A stretch of DNA of 64,000 bases from Oikopleura dioica (Eukaryota > Animalia > Chordata). The position numbers and the translations under genes were made by a program. The notes beneath the pieces were generated by a model. It was not told where the DNA came from. It made no database searches and saw only the letters and a program-made list of their open reading frames with translations. The stretch is from the NCBI GenBank assembly GCA_907165135.1, contig OU015569.1:12338001-12402000 (forward strand). Reading direction: 5' to 3'. This document shows, piece by piece, positions 5,358 to 60,785 of the stretch (its first letter is position 1; each line of letters starts with the position of its first letter).

Positions 5358-5600
5358 GTCTTGGAAACCTGTGTTGAAAACCTGATTCAGGGTCTGAATA
5401 ATTCAAACGAAAAGCCGCGTAGCGGCTTTTTAAAAACGAAGCCGCAAAGCGGCTTCGCCAACTTATCATTTCAATATCTTCCGAAATTTTAAGATAAGTT
5501 GGCGAAGCCGCTTTGCGGCTTCGTTTAAAAGCCGCTACGCGGCTTTTCATTTGAATTCTTCAGACCCTGAATCAGGTTTTCAACACAGGTTGTCAAGTCC
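5358..5600. mobile_element. Family-A MITE
   Basis: Mirrored ACCTGTGTTGAAAACCTGATTCAGGGTC arms around a GCCGC core. Confidence 0.75.
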
Positions 5601-6518
5601 AGATTCCAGGAGTTCAGAATTTGGGAACTTATTGAAATAATAATTTGGCGAAGCCGCTTTGCGGCTTCGTTTTCAAAAAGCCGCTACGCGGCTTTTCATT
5701 TAAATTCTTCAGACCCTGGCTCAGGGTTTCTACACAGGATGCCGAGCCCAAATTTCAGGGATAATTACTAAATTCGACGATTCAAAGAAGCGAAGAAATC
5801 TTTGGATTCTTGAGCTAATTTTTTCTGCTCCGAAGAAAGTGATTGACAGGGGTGCTCAAATCAAAGGAACCCGTTGGCAAGTGCGGGTGTAGTTGGTTAG
5901 CTGCGTTGTCAGCAGATCTTGACAGAGGTGATGTTTGGGGACGGATGAGCTGTTCGAGAATTCGCAAATTCGGCGCCTTCTCGTGTTTACCCTTTTTATC
6001 AGCAAGCTCTCAAGGCCCAAGCGCGTAAATCCTTCAAACAAGAACGCCACTACACGCAAGAAAGCCCTACTTGACATAAATCAAACAACATCACTGCCAT
6101 AAACTTGTAACCAAAATTAAGATTTTGCTCGTTATAAATTTCTTCTCGACGTTACTTTGCAAATATTCGGCTTCGACTCAAAAATCATCTAGCCGCGCTT
6201 CGTGCGGCTTTTTTACATTTTTTTGAAGCCGCAATCGTCTTCTTGAGTTTTAGCCCAAAAGAATCTATTGTTGAAAGTTATTTTGATTTTATGAAAATCT
6301 TCTCTAGAAAAGAAAAAAAGACACCATAACTGCTCTTTTGTCAACTTGTTTTTGACTTTTCTTATTTTCAATATAGTCGGAAAAAGTAACATATCAGTTG
6401 AATTTTGACTAGGAATATTACCATGAATAACTTTATGATATAACAACAAAGAAATATGACTTGAAACAAAAATGAAATTTCTACTAAGGGTGTCCCTCTT
6501 CTACCAGTTAAGCACCTA

Positions 6519-8395: not shown

Positions 8396-8662
8396 GAAGT
8401 AGTTAACTGTTTGGGAGTTGTTAAGTGGCGAGAGAGGAATGCGGGAAGCAAATAACAGAATGCGAAAAGTGAAGGACACTTTGCACTAATGAGCTTGTGA
8501 ACCGGCTAATGGAGATCACTAATAGCAACCCTTCCCGAATCCACAAATTAACTCTTTTTCGCCCAGCGCATTCCGATTTGCAATTATACCAAATAAATCA
8601 AAATGTAAATAACAACTCTAGTACTGCCACCTGCCAAGTAGAGGGTCTTTAAAATGGGAAAC

Positions 8663-9016
8663 TAGGCTCGGCAACCTGTGTAAAAATCTGAGTCAGGTTT
8701 TCGAAGGTTTAAGATGAAAAGCCGCGTAGCGGCTTTTTTAAAGAGAAGCTTCGCCAAATAATCTTTAAATTGAATATTCTAATTCTGGCGAAGCCGCTTT
8801 GCGGCTTCGTTTTTAAAAAGCCGCTGCGCGGCTTTTGATTTAAAACTTTAAAGTCCCTGACTCAGGTTTTCTACGCAGGTTGCCGGGAAAAACTCCCAAA
8901 ATTGGGCTCGGAAACCTGTGTCAGGGTCCTGAGTCAGGGTCCTGAATGAGCTCAAAAATAGATAACAGCTTTTTCAGGACCCTGAGTCAGGTTTCTACAC
9001 AGGTTGCCGAGCCTAG
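8663..9016. mobile_element. Two adjacent family-A MITEs
   Basis: GGCTCGGCAACCTGTG...CAGGTTGCCGG followed by GGGCTCGGAAACC...GGTTGCCGAGCC. Confidence 0.7.
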
Positions 9017-13014: not shown

Positions 13015-13227
13015 CTGTGCTCGACAACCTGTGAAGAAAACCTGAGTCAGGGTCTCGAAGAGCTAAAATGAAAAGCCGCGCAGCGGCTTCGCGAATATTA
13101 CCATTACGATCTATTAAAAATTCTAGCGAAGCCGCTGCGCGGCTTCGTTTTAAAAGCCGCTGCGCGGCTTTTCATTTTAGCTCTTTGAAACCCTGACTGA
13201 GGTTTTCTTCACAGGTTGCCGAGCCCA
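13015..13227. mobile_element. Family-A MITE
   Basis: Mirrored arms with a GCCGC core. Confidence 0.75.
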
Positions 13228-19654: not shown

Positions 19655-20176
19655 TGGCTCTAGAATTTGCGCTTTGTACAGGCAGATGGGCTCAGAAACC
19701 TGTGTATTAAACCTGAGTCAGGGTCCATTTCACCTCTTTAGGACTCAGGAAAATTTGACAAAGTCGATACTCTTTTCAGGCCTGAGCTAGATTAAGGGGT
19801 AGCCTAGGCTCAGCAACTTGTATAAAAAACCTGAGTCAGGGTCCTTAATAGGTTAAATAGACCCTGACTCAGGTTTTTTATACAAATTGCCGAGCACAGG
19901 ATACCCCCTTAATCCGGCTTTGGCCTGAAGAAGAGTATCGATTTTGACAAATTTTCTCTAGAAAAAGAGACAAACACCATAAATGAGTCTAAGCAAACTC
20001 GCATTTGAATTTTACCGTTTCAATTTAAAATCGTAAAAGATACCTATCCGATACTAAATCGTCGTAATTTGGTCTACGTAAAAATATAATGATAAATAAT
20101 GACAAAATAAATAATCGAACAAACTGGGCTGCAAAAAGCGCTGAAAATCCTAAAGCGCTCTTTTTTGATTAAAATT
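19655..20176 (-). repeat. Right (inverted) copy of the ~530-bp segmental duplication
   Basis: Contains CTCTAGAAAAAGAGACAAACACCATAAATGAGTCTAAGCAAACTCGCATTTG, the reverse complement of about 402-453, and is collinear throughout. Confidence 0.88.
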
Positions 20177-21129: not shown

Positions 21130-21648
21130 GGGCGACACTGGGAATGTCGCCGAATGTCGCTGAATGTCGCTGAATGTCGCCACTCATTTTTAAAAACAGA
21201 ATTTTCTTTCAAAATGCCTGTATTTTTAAGAAAAAGTGGTGACATTCGGCGACATTCAACAAGATTTAGCGACATAGGCGACATTCAACGACATTCGGCG
21301 ACATTCAGCGACATTCGGCGACATCCAACGACATTCGGCGACATTCAGCGACATTCGGCAACATTCATCGACATTCGGCGACATCCAACGACATTCGGCG
21401 ACATCCAACGACATTCGGCAACATCCAACGACATTCGGCAACATTCATCGACATTCGGCGACATCCAACGACATTCGGCGACATCCAACGACATTCAGCA
21501 ACATGCAACGATATTCGGCGACATTTGGCGACATTCGGCGACATTCGGCGACATTCTGTGACATCCAACGACATTCGGCAACATTCAAGGACATTCGGCG
21601 AAACTCGGCGACATTCGGCGACGTTTGGCGACTTTCCCAGGGCGCCCC
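21130..21648. mobile_element. MITE containing a 9-bp (GCGACATTC-type) minisatellite, nested inside a family-A TIR
   Basis: TIRs GGGCGACACTGGGAATGTCGCC and GGCGACTTTCCCAGGGCGCCC. TSD GAAAAACC at 21122-21129 and 21649-21656. About 40 9-mer units at 21240-21630, with inverted units at 21142-21180. Confidence 0.8.
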
Positions 21649-24436: not shown

Positions 24437-24664
24437 CGTGTAGAAAGCCTGAGTCAGAATCTGAAGGTTTAAAATGAAAAGCCGCGTAGCGGCTTTTTGA
24501 AAATCGAAGCCGCAAAGCGGCTTCGCTAGTTTTCAATTAGAGATTTAAGAAAGTTATATTGCGAAGCCGCTTTGCGGCTTCGATTTTTAAAAAGCCGCTA
24601 CGCGGCTTTTCAGTTTAGCTCTTTCAGGCCCTGACTCAGCCTTTCTACACATGTTGCCGAGCCA
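24437..24664. mobile_element. Family-A MITE
   Basis: Mirrored arms with a GCCGC core. Confidence 0.75.
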
Positions 24665-26801: not shown

Positions 26802-27033
26802 TGGGCTCAAAAAAAACTGTGTACAAAACCTGAGTCAGGGTCTCAAAAAGCTGAAATGAAAAGCCGCGCAGCGGCTTTCTTAAAAACGAAGCCGCGAATA
26901 CTACCACTGGAATCTATAATAAAATTCTAGCGAAGCCGCTTCGCGGCTTCGTTTTTGAAAAAGCCGATGCGCGGCTTTTCATTTTAGCTTTTTCAGACCC
27001 TGACTCAGATTTTCTACACAGTTTGTCGAGCGC
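26802..27033. mobile_element. Family-A MITE
   Basis: Mirrored arms with a GCCGC core. Confidence 0.75.
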
Positions 27034-27661
27034 ATATCAGAAGAAGAAGAAGATAAGGTTGCGCGAGTTTTGTGAAGTCTGAAAAATCTTGGAAGCCGCA
27101 AGTTTGAAATGATCCGTTCTCGCCGCTCACCACTGGTTTGATGGCATTAGCCACGGCGCGCGGTCGACCGCGTGCTTATGTTTCTCTAAACTTGACAGAG
27201 CAGCTCAATCAGCTCAGAATTTTCTCAATTCGCGGGCGACGCCATTGGAATGCGCGAATTTGTTCTCTACTCGCACACCCTCGGAATACGCCGAGTTGAC
27301 ACGCTCACGCTCACTCGAAGTACTCGAAGTTTAATGCTGGAATTCTAGCTTAGACGCTCAGCGACCTGAGTAAAAACCTGAGTCAGGGTCCTGAAAAACA
27401 CCTTAATCTATTTACGAATCTCTGGAGAAGCCGCGTTGCGGCTTTGATTATAGAAAATTTAAAAAATTGAAAGCCAAATGTCTTCAAATTGATTTAATTG
27501 CGCATTATTGTCGATTTTTCCCTACTTTGAATTGTGATAATAAAAATAAGTCGTAAACTCAGAGTCAAGAGTGTGGTCTCTCGCCAGTTTATGATTTTCC
27601 GCGATTGAGAAATATTTTGAAATCACTCTTTCGGAATTTTGTTTATTGCTTTGTATACAGA

Positions 27662-29877
27662 ATGCAAGTTTCAACTCATCCAGAAGAACTGACGAGAGAA
27701 GTTGTTGAGAAATGGCTGGAAGATTTTCAAAAAAAATTGAAGAGAAAAACGAGCAGAGATGATTTGGACAGGTTGATTTTGTGCATGGGCAGAATGCAGT
27801 TTCAAGATAATCGTTGTGCTGCATGGGACGAGAGCATTTTCGAAGATGGAAAAGGAAAGCTATCTGGAACTGACTTTTGGGGAGACAAAGTTAAGGTAGA
27901 ATGGAGAGTAACTTCTTTTCAAAAAATGATTCTCGACAAAAATCCAGATTTCGAAGGACGAAAAATTCAACGTTCGGAATTAAATGAAGAAACCGGAGAA
28001 TGGGTTCTCGATGAATCTTTTGAATTGATTACAGTTGGAGGAGAAGCGATTGTTTTGAAAGAAAAATTCGGCGAATTGGAAGTGGCCGTTCGCGTTCAGG
28101 CTTTTGATCCCGCGTTGTTTGTGGGGAATGAAGAATTGGAGTTTAAAATTCATCTTTCGGAAGGTAATTTTTATTTTTTATTTCTTTTTATGATTTTTAA
28201 GAGTACGAAATCGCCCAAAACGAGAAAAAAGACGACGCCCGAGTAATTCCTTTTCACGAAAACGTGATCAAAAATTTTTGCAACATCGAACTCTTTTTGA
28301 GAAGCGATATGGAAAAAGAAGACTGTCTTGGCTGGATCACGATTATGGAGAAATGCGACTCGGATTTGAGATGCAAATTGAAGAATGGAGAACTTAATTT
28401 GGAAGAAAGGAAGAAAATTGCGATTGGCGTCGAAGAGGGAGGAGAGTATTTGGGGAATATTGGAATCGTTCATTACGATAAGAAGCCGGAAAATGTTCTT
28501 TTGAAAAATAGAGAAGCAAAATGGATCGATTTCAGCATTGTTCAGGAAGAGACTGGACGAGAGAGTTATCGGGAGATGGGATACGCGAGGAGAGGAAGCA
28601 GATTTAGAAATTGGAGCTGTTTATGTAAGTTTTGAGCTTGTTGAGAAATTGTGTTTTATCTCTTTTTTTTCGTAGATGCGGGGTCTCCTGCCTTTTCTTA
28701 TGGCCCGCAGATAGGCGGAGACTACGGAGGTTATAGATCTTCTCCTCATATTTTGATTCTTTGCGAGTGGAAGACAGCCTGGACTCTTTTATTCAAACCA
28801 ATCGAAGAAAAAGAAAGAGAAATCATCAAAAAAGAACTTGAGGTAAATCTTTACTATTTATAAAAGAAAATAACCTTTCTCAGACTTGCAATGCTGGCTG
28901 GCTCACAAACTACGATCCATCAATCTCAAAAATCCAAAACTTGTCGAAGATCATTTCTCTAAAAAGCCCGTCTTCTGATTTTTACTTGGACGATCCAAAT
29001 TTGACGAAATCAACTGCAATGGCCAGTATAAAACAGAAACTGACGAAAGAGATCAATTTCGACTTCAAAAACGTGACAAAGAATGTTTTAAACCAAAAAG
29101 AAAGCGATCTTTGTGTACCCATTTCTGTTTCGGTGCTTTTGAGATGGGCACTCAAAAATGATTTGGGAACTATTGATCACTATATGAAAAGATTTTTTAC
29201 TCTGGAAAAAATCTTCACAAAACTGACAATGCTGATTTATCCGCGGAGTTTGGCTGGCTTCAATTTCAATCCGAAATTCGAAGAACAAAAATTTCAAAAC
29301 AACGAAATTGAAATGCTTCTCAGAAGATTGAAATTCAGGACTTATTTGAATGAAAGTGGATGGCAAATTATCAGAGAAATATCAAGCAACTACTACTCAA
29401 GCGAGTACTCGATAAATGCCAATTTTGATTTCGAGCAAGGTAAAAATTCAAAACTAAAAAGAAAATAAAAATTAAAATTCAGTCCTCCTCCATGGCAAAT
29501 TCGTCTTCTCCCGTCCCCTAACAGTCACCGGCGCCTATCTGGAACCCGGCGACGGGAAAACACCACTTTTCCACCAAATGGTGCTGGACCGAATCGAAAA
29601 CTTCGACTTCATTCTCCAAAACACTCTCATCGCCCATTCTGGCTCTCAAATCAGAATTCCAGTTTCCAGAGAATACTACGCAGGTTACGAAATGATGTTA
29701 GATTGCTTTAACAGCTACAACGACTTCGTCTTTTTTGGACCAAACAAAGAGTTCCTACCTTTGGTGAACGAAGAATTCAACATGGAAACAGAAAAATGGT
29801 ATCTTCTGCCTCAAGCTTTTTCAGTTACTCTGACTAGAACTCGATCACTGAAAAGAAAACAATCATTCCTTTATTAA
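27662..29877 (+). CDS. Atypical protein kinase fused to a papain-like (clan CA) cysteine protease; 5 exons, 680 aa (copy 1, intact)
   Basis: Exons 27662-28163, 28202-28624, 28676-28842, 28884-29439 and 29483-29877 join through GT-AG introns of 38-51 bp into one open frame of 2043 nt. Kinase motifs: ITVGGEAIV (Gly loop), VAVR (beta3), ITIMEKC (hinge), HYDKKPEN (catalytic loop), WIDFS, AGSPAF. Protease motifs: NQKESDLC (Gln to Cys +6), RPLTVTG, HQMVLDRIENFDFILQN (His to Asn +16), GSQIRIP. AATAAA follows at about 29895. Confidence 0.9.
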
Positions 29878-30446: not shown

Positions 30447-31687
30447 ATGAGCGAGAAAACTCCACCGAATTATTCCGAGAGTTCTCTCGGTAGTTCCTAT
30501 TATCAGTCAAAAAATGAGAACAATTCAAACCATCCTGATTATCAGCTTGAATCAATTATTGACCGTATTGACACGCTAGAAAAGGACAACACTTATCTAC
30601 GAACAGTAACATTTGATCTGCAACGAGAGAACAATGAGCTAAAACAGAAAAATGATGAGCTGGAGAAAAAATTTGCGACTTGGGAAGACATGACTCAATC
30701 TGATCAGTTGCTTGAGTTACAAATCTTTTTGAATTATTCAAAGATATTATCTTGAAAATCTTATCCCGAGTATTTCAAGCGTTTGCCCCGAGAAAATAAA
30801 AAGTCTCACTATAGACTACATAATAAGGAGACTTTTGGAAATAAAAATCAGTTTTTAGTTAATCAGAGGCTCGAATGTCTTAGTGATGGTGCTTTTCGGG
30901 TTAAAGTCAACAATACTCGGTATAATTAATTATTACAATTAAATCTTAAAAAATTTGAAACTCTGTCTCTGAAAACTAAAAAGGCAAATCAGATCGTCAA
31001 GAAAATGGAATTGACTGACCTCGACTTGCGTCATTTGGAAAAATCGAACATGCTTGGGATTCCAAGTTCGTTTGTAAAAAATGCATATGAAAGAGCGTTT
31101 TTAGGCGAGCGCATTTTGTTGACACGGGATTACAAAAACTACCACACAGAAAATGATGTTCAACAGTTTTTGAAGGCAATAAACTGTGGAATTGACGCCA
31201 TCAATATAGCTGTATCATTTGGAAACTGCGATAGGCATGGTGGTTTATAGACTATAAATTATAGTAATTAAAATTTAACGTAACAATCGAAGAAACCATC
31301 GGATAACAGCAAAAAGATTTACGCTGGACAACTGATAAAATTTGAAAACTGCTCATTTAAAGTTGTTATGGATTATATTAATGATGAATATATTCTGAAA
31401 ATGGATTTACGAATTGTGAACGATAAAAACTTCAATACGATTGCAATGCTTACTATGTTGAAAAAATCAGACTAAGTGACGAATGGATACATAGTGATAG
31501 ACTTATTGTCAGAAAACTAGAAAATTCTAATTCCTGCGAACGCCAAGGATTATCGCATCCCTCGGAAGCGACAGCGATTGAATCCGAAGATCAGAGTGAG
31601 AATACCAAGGAATTGTTTTATAACTATGTCGTTGATCGAGAAAAAACAAAAAAAGTTTTTACGTTCTGTTTTAAAAGAAAAAAATAG
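30447..31687 (+). pseudogene. Fragmented orphan gene with N-terminal coiled coil; function unknown
   Basis: ORF 30447-30755 has a heptad pattern (IDRIDTLEKDNTYLRTVTFDLQRENNELKQKNDELEKK). Further coding-like segments follow at 31005-31240, about 31287-31475 and about 31440-31687 in different frames. I could not build a clean GT-AG gene model. Confidence 0.45.
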
Positions 31688-35806: not shown

Positions 35807-36013
35807 TGGGCTAAGAAACCTGTGTCAAAAACCTGAGTCAGGGCCTGAAAGAGCTTAAATAATAAGCCGCGTAGCGGCTTTTTGAAAACAAAGCCGCAAG
35901 GCGATTCTGCCAGAATATGGTTTGCGGCTTCGTTTTCAAAAAGCCGCCACGCGGCTTTTCATTTAACCTGTTTCAGGCCCTGACTCAGGTTTTTAACACA
36001 GGTTGCCGGGCTC
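35807..36013. mobile_element. Family-A MITE
   Basis: Mirrored arms with a GCCGC core. Confidence 0.75.
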
Positions 36014-36676
36014 AGGCCGGATTTCTTCCCGTTTTTTCTTGTTATTCTGAAAATTGAACTTTGAAAATTGGCAATGAAAAATGCAGAGATTTAGCTGAAT
36101 TTATGCGTCGCGCATGATTAATATCGACAGAAGGGACAATGCATATTTTTTTCAGAATATGCAGATCGCAATCGAGATCGGGCTCGTTATGAATGCATGA
36201 GTGTCCAATTACGGGTGCTGCATTTTTGAAGAGTCCGAACAAGTACTTTGATTTCTCAGCGCGATTAAAATCGACTTTTTAATAAATCCACCTCTTGAGG
36301 CGGCGGAGGAGATGCAGTTTTCTACTGTCTTTAGGACTGAGCTCGGCAACCTGTGTAGAAACCTGAGTCAGGATTCGGATCGCGCTTCAGTTCAATCAGG
36401 ACTCTGACTCAGGTTTCCACGCAGGGTGCCGGGCTAAGTCTTGAGAGCTAGAAAGCAGAAATCATATAAGCAGATATCTCTTAGAATAGATCCACTAAAG
36501 TCAACTGAAAAATTCGCAAGCGCAAGTAAAGTTCCATTCTAAAAACAAGAGGACCGGTAGAAGGAGCAACCACAGATTGATAATACCAGGAGTTGGAACG
36601 GAAGTTCCTACTCGCTCTTCCTTGCAAGCCTCTCTAGAAATAGCAAAAGAAAAGTCTCGGTCTAAAAGATTGGAAC

Positions 36677-36920
36677 TGGACTCGGCAACCTGTGTAGAAA
36701 TCCTGAGTCAGGGTCCAAAAGATCTTAATTGAAAAGCCGAATAGCGGCTCTTTTAAAAACGAAGCCGCAAAGCGACTTTTCACTTTAGTCTATTCCAAAA
36801 TTTTGGCGATGATAAGGCAAAGCCGCTTCGTGGCTTCGTTTTAAAAAGCCGCTACGCGGCTTTTCAATTAAGATCTTTCCGAGCTTGACTCAGGTTTTAT
36901 TCACAGTTTGCCGAGCCTAG
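36677..36920. mobile_element. Family-A MITE
   Basis: Mirrored arms with a GCCGC core. Confidence 0.75.
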
Positions 36921-42127: not shown

Positions 42128-42642
42128 CTTATAAGTAACAAAAAATCAAGAAATGTTCCTTGCTAAAATATTATCGCGTGACGGAACCAGCGCAGTTCAA
42201 TATTTATCTTTCTGAAAAACATCTCATCCTTGCCAATTATTGCTTTAATTGGAAGCAACGTCAATGCCGACTGAAAATATACTAACATCCAAATTTTTGC
42301 TAAAACGAAGCGCTACGGCTCTAGAATTCTTTATTCTGCCTCGTCGATTTTGGATGAACGCACTTATTGGCCCAAGAAAGAAGAGAGTCCACTTTGCTTT
42401 TCGGTGAGCGTGTTCCAGAGTTGCAGAAGTCGCTAATGCGAGTCACAAAGAGCCTCTTCGCGGCATTCTCCATGTGCATACATTTCTCTCTGAGTGCTAC
42501 CTCTCCACAAATGAAGCCAAACAACTCGTTTTCTAATTCCAGTTCACTCTTTTTCGGCCACATCTTTTATTCTACTAGTTACTGTTTTTTTTCCTTACTA
42601 AATATTTCTTATGAAGAAATTCCGCTCCTATAAGTTATAAGC

Positions 42643-42882
42643 TGGGTTCGGCAACCTTCGTACAAAACCTGAGTCAGGGGCTGAGAGAACTAAAATGAAA
42701 AGCCGCGCAGCGGCTTTTTCAAAACGAAGCCGCAAAGCTGCTTCGCTAATATTACTATTACAATCTATTGAAAATTCTGGCGAAGCCGCTTTGCGGCTTG
42801 AGTTTTAAAAGTAGCTGCGCGGCTTTTCATTTTAGTTTTTTCAAACCCTGACTCAGGCTTTCTACAAAGGTTGCCGAGCCCA
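42643..42882. mobile_element. Family-A MITE (full-length example)
   Basis: TGGGTTCGGCAACC...GGTTGCCGAGCCCA. A copy of its right half recurs at about 43120-43215. Confidence 0.78.
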
Positions 42883-44021
42883 GGTTATAGCCTATATTGT
42901 CAATTCGAGTTTAGTACGAAGGGAGATAATTTTGAGTTTTTCAAGTAAAAACCATAAGTAAAACATCAAATTATGCACAAGAAATTTTGAATCACCAAAT
43001 TCTCTGAATATATAAAAATATCTTGTTCAATAAGTACCCCCTATGGACACACAGGCTGATAACATGAAAGTTACTCGCTCACGTGATTATTATTACAAGT
43101 TTTGAAATCCGCTCAAAGAGTGGCTTGAGTTTTTAAAAAGCCGCTGCGCGGCTTTTCATTTCAGTTCTTTTAGACCCTGACTCAGGCTTTCTACACAGGT
43201 TGCCGAGCCCAGGTTAAAGGCTATAGTTCAGAAGTCTAAAACTTAGATTCGGGAGGCATAAAAAGAAAAAAGTGTGACAGTTTTGCCCAAAATTCTGGTC
43301 AAATTTTATTGACCACTCAGATTTCCGTTTTCCAGCGATAGGCCAATCAGATTTTTGAAAAAATTGACTCTAAAATTTGAGTTTTTTTGTCGCCTTTTTG
43401 TCAATTCGAGTCACTAACCCTAACCATTAGCCTTTTGGGTAAAAAATTAAGGATGTCACAATGTTAATTTTTTTCTAGGTTTTTTAAAATCATCTATATT
43501 TTCGTAAGCTAAGCTTATCTCTTGGTTTCTAAAGCTCTTGATTTGCAAGTTTTTCAGTTCCATAAGTTTCATTTTATCTTCGGCCACGTGATCGGGCGCT
43601 AGATTTCATCGCACTCTGATGTTTTCGTTTTTGTGGCGATAAGGGACTCTGGCGCGTTTAGATTCAAAAAGTACTCGAGTCTTCCAAGAGAAACAAAAGC
43701 GAAATCGCCAAGGCGCAATCGCTCGAGATAAAAAGCCAACCTAAACAAGATTATTTTGCCATTGCTTGAAGCTTCTGATAACTGCAACTAGACCCGACGC
43801 CCTTAAGCAAACCGCCAAACTGTTTTCCTTCACCTTTTACATCACTACTGCTGTGGCTGCTTTTTCGTGAACTGGGAGTCACTTCTTTTTATTATCTAGC
43901 CTATTCGAAGGTGATTTTCCTGAAATCTTCTGAAAAATTAGCCCTCTCACCGACAGATCAATGATGAGCGATAGAGTGGCTGCTAAAAATAACAAATGAA
44001 AAATATTAAAACCAATCATTG

Positions 44022-46966
44022 TTACTCGGAACTTTCACTTTCAGTTTCAAGTGAAATAAAAGGGTATACAACAGGAGGTGGTGAAGTTAGAGTGATTGAA
44101 TAAGCTTGCGATAGAAGATACCACTTTTCCGTGTCCATGTTGAAATGTTCGTTGACTAAAGCTAAAGAAGTTTTGTTGGGTCCAAAATAAACAAAATCGC
44201 TGAAAGTGTTGTAGCAATCTTGCATCATTTCTTTTGAAGCGTAAAATGGTCGACCAAGAGGAATTCTGATTTGAGGGCCAGAATGGTCGATCAGAGTGTT
44301 TTGGAGAATGAACTCAGAGTATTCGATTCGGTCCAGCACCATTTGGTGAAAAATTATTGAACGATCGGGATTCATATACGCACCCGTGACGGTTAGAGGG
44401 CGCGAGAAAGTGAAATTGTGGTGCAGGAGGACTGGAAATTTATTAATTTTTCGATATTTTAATATTTTTAACCTTTTTCAAAATCAAAATTGCTGCCTAC
44501 TCGATAGCCAGTTTCTGTGATAATGTGCCATCCCTTGCAGCGAAGATAAGTTTCGAATTTCAATCTTTTTAGAAGAATTTCAATTTCGTTATTTTGAAAT
44601 TTTTGTTCTTCTTTTTCGGGTTGAGATTGAAGCCAGCCAAACTCCGCGGATAAACAACCATTGTCAGAAGTGTGAAGATGTTTTCAAGAGTAAAGACACT
44701 TTCCATTATTGAATTATCATAGCTTACTTTTAAAAATTTTTGATGGCCCATCTTAAAAGAACCGAAACTGAAATGGGCACACAGAGATCGCTTTCTTTTG
44801 GTTTAAAATAGGGTCAGGCATTATCACGTGATGACCGCTGGACACGCTCAAATTTTTTTGGGTGATAGCCTTGGGGGAACTGATCATAAAAATCATAGCG
44901 GCCCTTGCTTAACCCATCAACACCTTAACCATTTTAACCTGTTTTCGAATTAACCCGTTTTTGGCTATTTTTCACGAGAAAACGTATTTTTACTCGATCT
45001 TATACGTATCGAAACAAATAATTATTATTAATATAAGTTTAAATTATTCTTAAAATGCAGACTTAAGAATTTTACTTCGGGCCGTCTCAGCCCCGTTCCT
45101 TGACTTTTAAATTTAAGGGGCTTGACAAAGGCTTGGAACACTGAGTTGATCAATCTCAGTTATGTCCCCAACCCCACCCGCACCCATCGTTATAAAAATT
45201 CAAATTATTCTTGTTTTTTACCTTATTATGGTCTTCATAATGGAAAAAGTCGATTCTTTTCCTTGGGAACCCACATTTAATTATTAAGTTTGGATTTAAA
45301 GATTAATTAAAAGTTTTAAAAACTTATTTATTTATTTTGTATGCATTAAATCGAGCAAAAATAGCTTTTTTCAATTTAAATAGCCAAAAACGAGTTAAAC
45401 AGAAAACGGGTTAAAATGGTAAAGGTGTTGATGGGTTAAGCAAGGGCCGCTATGTTTTTGTGATCAGTATCCCCCAGGGCATCCCCAAAAAATTTGAGCG
45501 TGTCCAGCGGTCATCACGTGATAATGCCTGACCCTACTTTAAAACATTCTTCGTCACGTTTTTGAAGTCGAAATTGATCTGTCTCGTCAGTTTCTGCTTT
45601 AGACTGGCCATTGCGGTTGATTTCGTCAAATTCGGATCGTCCAAGCAAAAATCAGAAGACGCGTTTTTTAGAGAAATGATTTTTGACAAGTTTTGGATTT
45701 CTTCGGTTGATGGAGTGCATTTTTCTGAGAGCCAATCGGCATTGCAGGCCTAAAAGTGTTTTTTTAACAAAAATTGAGACTGACCTTAAGTTCTTCTTCG
45801 ATTTCTTCTTTTATTCTTTCCTCTTCAATCGGATAGAAAGAAAGAGTCCAGGCTGTTTTCCAGTCACAAAGAATCATTATTTGAATTGGAAATTCAGCCC
45901 CTCCCCATTTCCCAATTATCTGCCAGCCATTCGAAAACGCAGCAGACCCAGCATCTACGAGACAAGAGATACATCACTAGTATATTTAAATAATACCAAC
46001 TAAAACATACGTAAATAGTTCATATCCCTATGTCTGCTTCCTCTTCTCGCATAGCCCATTTCGCGATAGCTCCTTCGTTCAGTAGTTTCTTGAAGGACTC
46101 CGAAATCGATCCATTTCGCATCTCCATTTTTTAGAAGAATATTTTCCGGCTTCTTATCCAGATGCCGAATTCCAATTTTCTCCAAGTATTCGAGTCCCTC
46201 TTTAATCAAAATCGCGATGTTCTTCCTTTCTTGCAAATTTAAATCGTCGTTCTTGAGTCTGGTACGCAGGTTGCAGTCGCACTTTTCCATAATCGTTATC
46301 CACCCAAGACAGTCTTCATTTCTCAAGTCATATTTCGAAAAGACTTCGATGTTGCAATAATTTTTGATCACGTTTTTGTGAAAAGGAATCACTCGAGCGT
46401 TGTCTTTATCGTCATTTATAGCGATTTCGTAATCTTGGATTTGTAAATCGAAATAAGAAAAATAATAAAGTTACCTTTTGAAAGATGAATTTCAAACTCA
46501 AACTGGTCATGCGACTCCACAAAGAGCGCCGAGTCAAAAGCCTGCACCCTAACAGCAACTTGCAATTCTCCGAACTTTTCTTCCAAAACAATTGATTCTC
46601 CTCCAGCTGAAAGTATTTTTGCTGGAGAGATTGATCGAGAATCCATTCGCCAGCTTCTTCTTTTAATTCTGACCGGTGAATTTTTCGTCCTTCAAGACCT
46701 TGATTTTGATCGAGGATCAATTGTTGGAATAAAGTCATAGTCCATTGTCCTGAGGACCATTCAGAAACTTTTCCTTTACCATTCTCAAAAATAACCTCAT
46801 CCCAGCCAGCACAAAGAACATCGTCAAACTCTATTCTCTCTACGGACAGAATTAATCTGTCCAAACCATCTCTGGTCGTTTGTCTCTTCAATTTCTTTTT
46901 AAAATCCTTAAGCCATTTTTCGACAGCTTCTCTTGACAATTCGATTGGATGCGTCGAAACCAGCAT
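44022..46966 (-). pseudogene. Paralog (copy 2) of the kinase-papain-like protease fusion gene; interrupted in this assembly
   Basis: Starts MLVSTHPIELSREAVEKWL (copy 1: MQVSTHPEELTREVVEKWL). Same four intron positions: 46474-46434, 46010-45955, 45784-45750, 44472-44432. Retains HLDKKPEN, WIDFG, DLCVPIS and HQMVLDRIEYSEFILQNT. Exon 4 contains a 728-bp MITE (44809-45536). 1-bp deletions occur at about 46618, 44797, 44734 and 44614. Confidence 0.82.
44809..45536. mobile_element. hAT-type MITE inserted in exon 4 of kinase-protease copy 2
   Basis: Long TIRs beginning TAGGGTCAGGCATTATCACGTGATGACCGCTGGACACGCTCAAATT. 8-bp TSD GTTTAAAA / CTTTAAAA (1 mismatch). Removing it restores collinearity with copy 1 (KNVLNQKESDLC). 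Confidence 0.9.
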
Positions 46967-49666: not shown

Positions 49667-50269
49667 TCATTAAGGATCTCTGAGCCCTTGTCTCAGGCAT
49701 TCCACACAGATTGCTGTTCTTGATGGAATAGAGATCTCTTTCAATTTGAGGCCGTTTTCTTTTTCGTGTGTTTGACTTTAGGAAGATGGCGTTTGCTTTG
49801 ATTAGGGTCGAAAATTCTAGGGACGGTGGCTGGTGGCTTACTGGGCGGCTAAATCAACCTGTTCGACCGCGCAGTGGTCAAATTGGACAAACAATAAAAA
49901 ATGAGAAATCAGAAAAGGCGGCGATAAGCAGCCGCAAATGGCACTCGAGAACATCGATGCGGTCACATCTCAAGAATCCCCTGCCCAGCATTAGACCGCC
50001 GCCAATGTTCTACAGCGGTTTCCGATCGTAATCACAACTTTATTTTTATATCATCCTCTTTTTGACACAACTCAACTTGCCTCCAAATCGAGGTCATCAG
50101 CTAGACAAGTGGCTTCTCGATTTCAGGACTTGCTGGGCTTCGCAACCTAAGTAGAAAACCTGAGTCAGAGTCTTAAAGATCTAAAATGAAAAGCCGCGTA
50201 GCGGGTTTTTTTAAATAAGCAAACTCGAAGCGGCTTCGCAAAATTAATTTTCTTTCTGTTTCTGTCAAA

Positions 50270-50510
50270 CTGAGCTCGGCAACCTGTGTAAAAAGCCTTT
50301 GTCAGGGTCTGAAAGAACTAAAATGAAAAGCCACGCAGCGGCTTTCTTCAGAAACGAAGCCGCAAAGCGGCTTCGCGGATATTTTGATAGATTGAAATGG
50401 TTGTATTAGCGAAGCCGCTTCGCGGCTTTATTTTTAAAGCCGCTGCGCGGCTTTTCATTTTAGTTCTTTCATACCCTGACTCAGGTTTTCTACTCAGGCT
50501 GCCGAGCGCA
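50270..50510. mobile_element. Family-A MITE
   Basis: Mirrored arms with a GCCGC core. Confidence 0.75.
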
Positions 50511-51070
50511 GAGTATTCGAGAGATCTCTTTTTCATCCTTCAAGAACTCAGGCAATTTGCAAGCAGTTTTGATTGTGGCTCTAGAATATTTTCGATCAAC
50601 AAAGAGGTCGATGAAAAAAACGGCGGCTTTAATTTGATTTGTTTTCCTGAGTGGAAGGAGTAAGGTCGCGTGTGTTCAACGAATTTCCCAAAAGAAGCAG
50701 TGAAATAAATTTATCAAATAAATTAGCCGCGTTTTTGTGAAAATATTTTCTCCCCAAAGAGGAGTTGCCCGCTCCCTTTTTTGTGTACTGATTTTCGTTT
50801 TTTGAAAGGAACTGGCTTGCTAATCCGCTGTAATCACGTTTTCTCGGGCCTCCTTATCGCCTTGTAAAGCCGAAAAAGAAGGACAGAAAGAGAAACGGCA
50901 GATTACGCAAACGAAAATGGAGAAAAGTGAACCCAACTTTGGCAGGTTTAATCGACCCCTGCCTCGGCTGGGAGGAGATAAATGACAGAAAAGACTAATG
51001 TTTTTTCTATCTAAAATGCTGGTTCAATACGACTTCTAGTCAAAGGCTTTTTAGAGTACCTTTAGAAAAT

Positions 51071-58912: not shown

Positions 58913-59865
58913 CAGCCACCTCGATAAAACTGGTCAACGTGTGCTCCCATGTTCTCTCCACATTTTTCGCGTCAAAAAAGAAGTTCTAAAGAAAACGACA
59001 TGCGCATGTGTACTGTTTTGAGATGTGTATCTATTCAGCGTTGTCTTTTGTACCTGAGATATTCGAGAGCGCTCATTTTTTGAAGGCGGCGGAGATCCAG
59101 AGGAATGCAGAAGCGAATGTCGCCCAAGCGAGACCAGTCGCTAAAAATTCGAGACGGAAAAGAAGCGAAAATTCCAACACGTACTTTTTGGGTCAAGCAT
59201 TTTTCTCGATTATTTTAACACAGTGACACCCTTAATTTTTGATTTTTCTGTAAATAATAATTTTGAAAGCCAAAAATTTCTGTAAATAAAGTCGAATCGA
59301 AAAGCCGCGTGCGGCTTTGAGCCAAATAAACTATTGAAGCCGCGAAAAAGCGCGGCTCTTCCTTTATTTTTGCTCGAAGCCGCAAGCGGCTTTTCAATTC
59401 AACTTTCAATGACAGAGATTTTTGGCCCTCAGAATTATTTTTAGCAGGAAAATTAAGGGTGTGATTATGTTAATTTTTCTTGGCCCGATTCCTAATTTGG
59501 TGGTGGGATATATTTTGCCCGGATTTGTTCATTGGCGATTTTCGCTATTTCCTCGCTCGGCTGAAGCTTTTTTCTCCGCAAAAGAGCTCAACTTCTCCGT
59601 CTGAATTGGTTGTTTCTTGTTCGTGCAAATTATAATTTAAGTTGTACCGTGCCAAATGTTCTTTCTCCTGGCGAAATCCGCCACAAGCCGCTGTAGTTGC
59701 CGCACGAATTGAGCTGCTTTGAGGTCGAAGGTGGCGACGATTCCGTTTATCGCCACGCTCACGTGGACTCCTGCATCTTCTGCAGCAGAAAATTTGGGAG
59801 TGTTCAAAAATAATAAACAAACCTCTTTTTTCTTCTTTTGCTAAAATTTTGTATACTAGTTCAAT

Positions 59866-60102
59866 CTGGGCTCGGCAATCTGTGTAGAAAACCTGAGTCA
59901 GGTTCTGAATAGCTAAAACGAAAAACCGCGCAGCGGCTTTTAAAATCGAAGCCGCAACCCGGCTTCGCCAGAATTTTGATATATTCTAATAGTAGTATTA
60001 GCAAAGCCGCTTCGCGGCTTCGTTTAAAAGGCGCTACGCGGCTTTTCATTTTAGCTCTTCAGAACCTGACTCAGGTTTTCTACACGGATTGCCGAGCCCA
60101 GC
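59866..60102. mobile_element. Family-A MITE
   Basis: CTGGGCTCGGCAATC...GATTGCCGAGCCCAG. Confidence 0.78.
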
Positions 60103-60785
60103 TTGAAAATATCCTACAAAAAGCCGCAAAGCCTGAATTGCCATCTCTATCAATTTTAAGTCCTGTCGAAGCCGCATGCGGCTTTTTAGCAAAGTTCTCT
60201 CAGGAGGGCCCAGTTGATGGTTCCCCATTAATCCAGAAATAAGAACAAAAATTACCGATTTTCTTTTCTGATTTAATTCTTTGAAGATTCTTCTTTAGCG
60301 CAAAAACCTGGTTTTGAGATTTTTGAACTGGCTCATCCCTTTTTCTTGGTCATCTTTCGTTTCTATTTTCTGATCTTGGGTCTTTTTCAAAGAATAGAAG
60401 TCGCAGGAAAAAAGAAGAAAGAGGCCCGTTTCTTTTCTTTATTTTGCATTTCCGGCGGGATTGATTTTTGATTTTCGGCGTTTGCGCGATTTCGTTTTCG
60501 GATTTGGCCCCTCTGTGTTCCTATTTTGGTAATCATAATCTGCGCCGCCAGTTAGGCTCTCGCTTGATTTAATTTAACCACTAACTCGTATTTCTCGCGT
60601 TTCCGACTTCGATTCAGCGCTTTCGTATTCATAAATGATGTTTTCGCTTTCTCGAGAAGAGTTTTTAGACTTTACCAAATAGACGAATTGAAAACAAGAA
60701 GATAAAACTGATAAATTAACCCACTTTCGGGTTATGCAATGATTTCGGCGAATTATTAAAAAGTAAGTTCATATCTAATGCATAG

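Follow-up and report, generated by a model that had tools for sequence, protein, structure and literature searches.

The 64,000-nucleotide stretch of the Oikopleura dioica OKI2018_I69 genome analyzed here (the window; all coordinates below refer to it) carries, at 27662-29877 on the plus strand, a gene predicted to encode a protein kinase fold followed by a papain-like cysteine peptidase fold. The gene is on contig C2 (12,959,145 bp), close to where the X-specific region (XSR) ends. The five exons proposed in the initial annotation splice into 2043 nt, predicted to encode 680 residues and a stop codon with no internal stop; the four introns (38, 51, 41, and 43 nt) all have GT-AG borders and a GC content of 11-29%. 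The exon junctions are those of a genomic gene model, with support from paralogs and relatives at the genome level.

Exon 1 (27662-28163, residues 1-167), whose start Met is kept in paralogs, encodes a family-specific N-terminal region (residues ~1-115) and the kinase N-lobe, including two sites recognized by conservation among loci, the Gly-loop GGE (28037-28045) and Arg144 at the β3 Lys position (28091-28093). After intron 1 (28164-28201, 38 nt, phase 1), exon 2 (28202-28624, residues 168-308) provides the kinase hinge, the catalytic loop H-Y-D260-K-K262-x-x-N265, the D277-F-S motif, and a basic activation segment. Intron 2 (28625-28675, 51 nt, phase 1) precedes exon 3 (28676-28842, residues 309-364), which encodes a remnant of the P+1 loop, the kinase C-lobe, and a family motif, C-x-W-x-T-A-W. 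Intron 3 (28843-28883, 41 nt, phase 0) is followed by exon 4 (28884-29439, residues 365-549), which spans the end of the kinase, an interdomain segment (residues ~400-434), and the helical half of the papain fold; it contains the putative oxyanion Gln435 (29094-29096) and the putative catalytic Cys441 (29112-29114), roles assigned from fold and conservation. Beyond intron 4 (29440-29482, 43 nt, phase 1), exon 5 (29483-29877, residues 550-680) encodes the β half of the papain fold and the stop codon, with His580 (29572-29574) and Asn596 (29620-29622) placed by conservation and a paralog model.

Immediately upstream, a block of ~200 bp (27458-27661, plus strand) is 88-94% identical to the corresponding sequence of the closest paralogs, L004 and L054, and is probably a promoter or 5' leader. 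It terminates in AG two bases before the ATG, a possible cis- or trans-splice acceptor. The predicted N-terminus is hydrophilic and shows no signal peptide (maximum 19-residue hydropathy -0.42 over the first 30 windows), so that the cytosolic location proposed earlier is probable. Judging from the genomic sequence, this is an intact, real O. dioica gene whose product is soluble and combines two enzyme folds.

The kinase and the protease had been read as parts of one chain, and other family members bear this out. Intron 1 is missing (gap 0) from paralogs L032, L033, and L043; the position of intron 2 is read through without an insertion in L034 and in the metagenomic open reading frame (ORF) P0092; intron 3 is missing from L034, L036, and L037; and intron 4 from L036 and P0092. 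L034 is a single frame from the kinase N-lobe to beyond the protease Cys, and P0092 stays open from the DFG region through the whole of the protease. Because each intron is absent in some paralog or relative, and because the gene models CBY10809.1, CBY36763.1, CBY40980.1, and CBY37225.1 from the Bergen genome align end to end with our gene (residues 1-668, 40-45% identity), we conclude from these genomic comparisons that kinase and protease form a single polypeptide in this family.

For structural analysis of the C-terminal domain, AlphaFold2 was given a 96-row alignment headed by paralog P0007:186-450, whose domain is 48% identical to that of the gene. The resulting model had a predicted local distance difference test score (pLDDT) of 83.9 and a predicted template modeling score (pTM) of 0.81. 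The equivalents of Gln435, Cys441, His580, and Asn596 are residues 31, 37, 176, and 192 of the model. According to DSSP (helix 37-53; strands 172-184 and 187-191), the Cys opens a 17-residue helix, the His lies on a long strand, and the Asn directly follows the next strand, so that the modeled placement of the four residues is that of papain. All 50 matches listed in a wide VIA-align structure search were clan CA-type folds, among them pro-Der p 1 (the best, Z 9.4), Der f 1 (9.3), xylellain (9.2), the C39 domain of PCAT1 (8.9), cathepsin B (8.7), and staphopain (7.9), and C39-like and C1 clusters predominate in two Atlas structure searches. Given the uniform VIA-align list, the two Atlas searches, and where the four residues sit in the model, the assignment of residues ~430-668 to a clan CA (papain) fold, which the initial annotation had expected structure prediction to reveal, is secure at the level of a paralog model. 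In the 60 loci fetched for conservation, intron, and tree work, which were chosen by similarity to the gene, the four residues are conserved at 93-98% (Gln435 in 58/59, Cys441 in 56/60, His580 in 55/56, and Asn596 in 54/56).

The proposed assignment to papain family C1A, in contrast, did not hold. The spacings advanced as its signature, +6 from Gln435 to Cys441 and +16 from His580 to Asn596, are found where they were claimed but are not diagnostic, because the C39 peptidase PCAT1 (Q15/C21/H99/D115) has both (PMC6959990). The domain has no PF00112 match, its motifs read Q-x4-L-C-V-P and Q-N-T/S with no equivalents of papain Gly23 and Trp26 around the Cys or of Trp177 after the Asn, and C39 structures tie with those of C1A. 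The absence of the papain disulfides, signal peptide, and I29 pro-domain had been recognized correctly: the domain contains only two Cys residues (441 and 624), and exons, paralogs, and profiles gave no I29 match in Pfam. We therefore rejected membership of C1A. No PF03412 or PF13529 (C39 or C39-like) match was found either, and the third residue of the putative triad is Asn rather than Asp. More broadly, searches with the C-terminal domain yielded no relevant match in Pfam or among PDB sequences (E<=1 or E<=10; exons, full-length paralogs, and profiles). By sequence, the peptidase falls outside every catalogued family, and on the model the most fitting label for it is unassigned clan CA peptidase. 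It is quite likely to be active, as a cysteine peptidase or isopeptidase with a papain mechanism acting in the cytosol or nucleus.

Many eukaryotic cytosolic clan CA enzymes are peptidases of ubiquitin-like proteins (Ubl) (PMC3417536), and the fold matches of the model include ATG4A (Z 8.1), UfSP (7.4 and 6.8), ZUFSP/Mug105 (6.3 and 5.5), and viral PLpro. The peptidase might accordingly be a deubiquitinase or another Ubl isopeptidase, with the fusion editing ubiquitin signals, gated or not by the kinase. We consider this somewhat unlikely, as the Ubl-peptidase matches rank below or tie with those of C1A and C39, the protease domain has no Ubl-peptidase match in Pfam, and this copy lacks a ubiquitin-binding domain.

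In the kinase half, exon 2 matches the Pfam Pkinase family (PF00069) above cut-off (E 3e-8). A model of paralog P0034:8-412, which includes the N-terminal ~115 residues (pLDDT 90, pTM 0.90), matched eukaryotic protein kinases (ePKs) with a Foldseek E of about 1e-7 and VIA Z of 11-12, with no subfamily standing out; on this model, residues ~120-395 are a protein kinase fold. A separate N-terminal domain of ~110 residues had been proposed. The region is indeed family-specific, and the N-terminal 120 residues alone gave no usable match in an Atlas structure search, but the model suggests that the N-terminal ~115 residues pack with the kinase, and they may belong to the kinase unit rather than form a free domain.

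The catalytic apparatus of the kinase is intact in some respects and altered in others. Among the fetched loci, the Gly-loop GGE (51/51), D260 (53/54), K262 (54/54), N265 (54/54), and D277 (52/53) are invariant or almost so, and the Arg at the position of the β3 Lys is invariant (51/51). The residue preceding the Asp of the HxD motif is highly variable and is Arg in only 3/56; the kinase is therefore non-RD. The gene and its subclade carry DFS instead of DFG. The canonical pair of β3 Lys and αC Glu is absent: the P0034 model has no αC helix, with a strand and a three-residue turn in its place and no conserved Glu. The C-lobe is trimmed, and the APE motif has been lost in the O. dioica family, in which a G-S/T-P-A/G-F remnant is kept and the Glu is not.

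More canonical kinases occur in relatives from marine metagenomes (L061, L062, and L068; GC 35%), in which the same protease follows a kinase that carries an SPE motif; L062 also keeps the β3 Lys. Since these deep relatives share the protease, the fusion is probably older than the Arg substitution. L062 and L068 branch deeply and have longer introns at other positions. In L061 (403-3455; ENA ERZ508537), the domains are arranged in tandem, kinase-protease-kinase-protease, and the first protease repeat has Ala for His.

No other part of the protein is as constrained as residues 401-440 (nonsynonymous-to-synonymous ratio pN/pS 0.15-0.16), which connect the kinase to the protease active site. The matching segment has a pLDDT <50 when the protease is modeled alone (P0007) and is poorly ordered with either half modeled alone. 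We infer that this conserved, poorly ordered segment is an interdomain element. One rival to control of the protease by the kinase has the polarity reversed: the kinase would be the effector, and the protease would process its own chain or act as a releasing module, cutting within residues 400-434 to free or activate the kinase. In favor of this reading, D260, K262, N265, and D277 match the protease triad in invariance, the conserved segment runs directly up to the active site, C39 domains, joint best among the fold matches, are processing modules of larger proteins, and deep-branching relatives retain a canonical β3 Lys and an SPE motif. The loss of the β3 Lys, αC helix, and APE motif in O. 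dioica nevertheless makes this arrangement unlikely. The few intact-looking paralogs with Ser for Cys fit either polarity. They include L032, which is near-identical to L033 (both on C4, at ~3.23 and 3.29 Mb), shares with it the Ser substitution, and is possibly a pseudo-protease member of the family.

The gene belongs to a multi-copy family, as had been suggested. A search of the OKI2018_I69 assembly (64,281,565 bp, 19 contigs) gave 137 matches to exon 4 and 124 to exon 5, which correspond to ~115-120 loci in a hand count with neighboring pieces merged, a lower bound. On the long arm of the pseudoautosomal region (PAR), about 25 loci fall within the distal 2.6 Mb, and on the XSR ~16 fall within the distal 2 Mb; the remaining loci are on short arms and beside centromeres. 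All five exons are uninterrupted in at least 25 of the 60 fetched loci, and the others are cut by the edge of the fetched sequence, carry extra insertions, or are broken. The ratio of nonsynonymous to synonymous substitution rates (dN/dS) is 0.45-0.64 against the closest paralogs, 0.18-0.35 by region in an older clade, and 0.18-0.47 for the exon with the kinase catalytic loop and for the protease regions; on these sequence comparisons, purifying selection acts on both halves. A quick tree (126 columns), poorly resolved and biased by the choice of loci similar to the gene, places the gene in a young, mostly XSR subclade (Shimodaira-Hasegawa-like approximate likelihood ratio test support of 95), with most Bergen proteins grouping separately. 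The Okinawa and Bergen expansions are clustered and largely separate, with pseudogenes among them, and we take the family to evolve rapidly by birth and death. A very divergent member (L040/P0184/P0112) is common to both lineages and perhaps represents an old, low-copy branch.

High copy number and the miniature inverted-repeat transposable elements (MITEs) near the gene speak for cargo carried by a transposon or an endogenous virus, or for a multiplied sequence without function. This explanation was rejected as largely refuted and is highly improbable: four spliceosomal intron positions are conserved, selection is purifying, the close-relative scans of viral and prokaryotic contigs found no close relative, and a Foldseek search of BFVD gave no match at E<1e-3. 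Moreover, similarity between copies stops ~200 bp upstream and the flanks tested share no terminal repeats, so that the copies arose as gene duplications.

The family might instead serve development or housekeeping in this lineage specifically, for instance in germ-line function or the renewal of epithelia. A dN/dS below 1 everywhere would agree with such a role, as would the few deep members that have counterparts in the Okinawa and Bergen genomes (L040/P0184). The copies would then reflect relaxed duplication in repeat-rich chromosome ends instead of conflict, and the clusters do lie in subtelomeric, pericentromeric, and short-arm regions that are rich in repeats and prone to rearrangement (PMC11067885). 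We regard such a role as quite unlikely, because more than 100 copies in a reduced genome of 64 Mb, two separate expansions, and frequent pseudogenes appear more typical of defense families.

The window contains a second family member, convergent with the gene on the minus strand (44022-46966). Conservation of Cys, His, and Asn in this paralog had been cited in the initial annotation. The codons are indeed kept, but the paralog is a pseudogene and gives no evidence of function; it was rejected as a functional copy in view of frameshifts in exons 1 and 4 and a transposon insertion. The insertion is a 728-bp, hAT-like, non-autonomous DNA transposon (44809-45536) whose terminal inverted repeats, 50 bp each, are perfect and whose 8-bp target duplication matches at 7/8 positions; it is located within exon 4 of the paralog, immediately ahead of the codon for the oxyanion Gln. 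At least 10 copies (70-83% identity) of a palindromic, MITE-like repeat of ~230 bp are present in the window, at 5360-5605, 8659-8885, 13015-13227, 24438-24663, 26814-27034 (630 bp upstream of the gene), 35807-36015, 36676-36920, 42640-42886, 50265-50511, and 59863-60104. Elsewhere, the window contains an inverted duplication of ~530 bp (243-776 and 19655-20176; 83% identity, 19 kb apart), a tandem array of short imperfect repeats with spurious ORFs on both strands (21238-21636), and, downstream of the gene, gene pieces on the plus strand (30447-31250) that include an ORF of 102 residues predicted to form a coiled coil.

Our best guess, with a probability of about 0.42, is that the protein is a cytosolic protease that is switched by its kinase-fold domain and has a role in defense. 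In the protease, Cys441 would be the nucleophile and His580 the base, with Asn596 orienting the His and Gln435 forming the oxyanion hole. The kinase fold would bind Mg-ATP via its intact catalytic loop and DFG Asp, the invariant Glu128 of the Gly-loop and Arg144 of β3 standing in for the usual pair of Lys and αC Glu. The nucleotide or autophosphorylation state of the kinase would then shift the conserved segment 400-434, which would take over the part of the I29 pro-domain from within the chain, as an internal pro-peptide. Control of the protease in cis by the kinase-fold half seems to us an evenly balanced proposition. A role in intracellular defense against pathogens or genomic parasites is plausible at somewhat less than even odds and would account for the copy number, clustering, and turnover; the signs of it are indirect, namely the non-RD kinase (PMC8463890), the large clustered expansions, and the frequent pseudogenes. 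The boldest version would be a new clan CA peptidase family hard-wired to an Arg-type atypical kinase, making a single-chain sensor-switch-protease that, in more than 100 variable copies, is a main intracellular immune effector system of appendicularians; this we hold to be doubtful.

Several observations weigh against the switched defense protease. Substitution of Arg for the β3 Lys is the classic change that renders a kinase dead. No recognizable sensor domain is present in this copy, and no region has a dN/dS >1, the highest value being 0.97 (exon 3, within the youngest clade), a pattern that gives no sign of diversifying selection. The structural matches to the protease domain have middling fold scores (VIA-align Z 8-9.4), and Foldseek with the P0007 protease model gave no PDB match at E<1e-3.

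Among the matches listed in homolog and profile searches, all named relatives are from O. dioica, and the rest are unassigned marine metagenome proteins; scans of viral and prokaryotic contigs, which reach close relatives only, were blank. One annotated model, P0127 (CAG5114306.1, chr2.g8366), joins part of the protease to a J-domain-like sequence with an HPD motif; this may be an artefact of gene-model fusion. We found no description of the family, or of a fusion of a kinase with a clan CA peptidase in an animal, in the literature searched, subscription papers lying mostly outside that search. Within the searchable literature, the claim of novelty is upheld: the architecture is real and apparently undescribed, although built from two known folds. 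With more than 100 loci against ~17,000 genes in O. dioica (PMC8008620), the family makes up about half a percent of the gene set of this chordate, whose genome is drastically reduced; in databases its members are mislabeled as plain kinases or listed as uncharacterized. If the kinase gates the protease, the fusion would represent a novel type of proteolytic switch contained in one chain, and Oikopleura might use it for intracellular defense. For kinase enzymology, the invariant Arg-for-Lys substitution, in a kinase whose catalytic loop is otherwise intact, offers a case that can be tested. This copy adds a further intact member and little beyond the family; it is a good candidate for expression.

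We compared the protein with known systems. The O. dioica entries named 'Protein kinase domain-containing protein', which are the four Bergen models, belong to the same family and have the same architecture; they carry automatic annotation only, and their peptidase domain went unrecognized. Non-RD kinases and pseudokinases among the ePKs (IRAK, RIPK, receptor-like cytoplasmic kinases (RLCKs), and IRAK3) share with the gene the kinase fold, HxDxKxxN, the DFG Asp, and the non-RD state. Plant RLCKs and receptor-like kinases, IRAK3/4, and PERK tie with many others in the VIA matches (Z 11-12), at 14-22% identity. Unlike typical ePKs, the gene has the invariant β3 Arg, the GGE Gly-loop, and the extra N-terminal ~115 residues, and it lacks APE and, in the model, the αC helix, with the C-lobe trimmed.

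The protease domain resembles C1A peptidases, represented by pro-Der p 1 (1xkg), cathepsin B (1qdq), and xylellain (3ois), with Z of 9.4, 8.7, and 9.2 and root-mean-square deviations (rmsd) of 3.9-5.2 over 153-163 residues, and shares with them the order Gln-Cys...His-Asn, both spacings, and Asn as the third residue. It differs in its 5-15% identity to them, in the missing Gly, Trp, disulfide, signal peptide, and I29 features described above, and in its fusion to a kinase. C39 and C39-like peptidases (PCAT1, 7s5j; ComA, 5xe8) align with a lower rmsd than C1A (2.9 over 126 residues, Z 8.9), have the same spacings, are cytosolic modules within larger proteins, and dominate the Atlas structure matches. 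The domain of the gene, in contrast, has Asn instead of Asp, is ~240 rather than 130-150 residues long, lacks a Pfam match and an ABC transporter, and is eukaryotic and intron-containing. The clan CA Ubl peptidases (ATG4, UfSP1/2, and ZUFSP) are similar in fold (Z 5.5-8.1), in being cytosolic, and in having no pro-domain; they show no sequence match, and the gene differs from them in its kinase fusion and in having no known Ubl-binding element. Finally, in IRE1, RNase L, and MLKL, a kinase or pseudokinase domain is coupled to an effector in a stress or defense protein. Their effectors are RNases or a membrane-piercing bundle rather than a clan CA peptidase, and we claim no homology to them; they offer an analogy for how a kinase fold might gate the protease to which it is joined.
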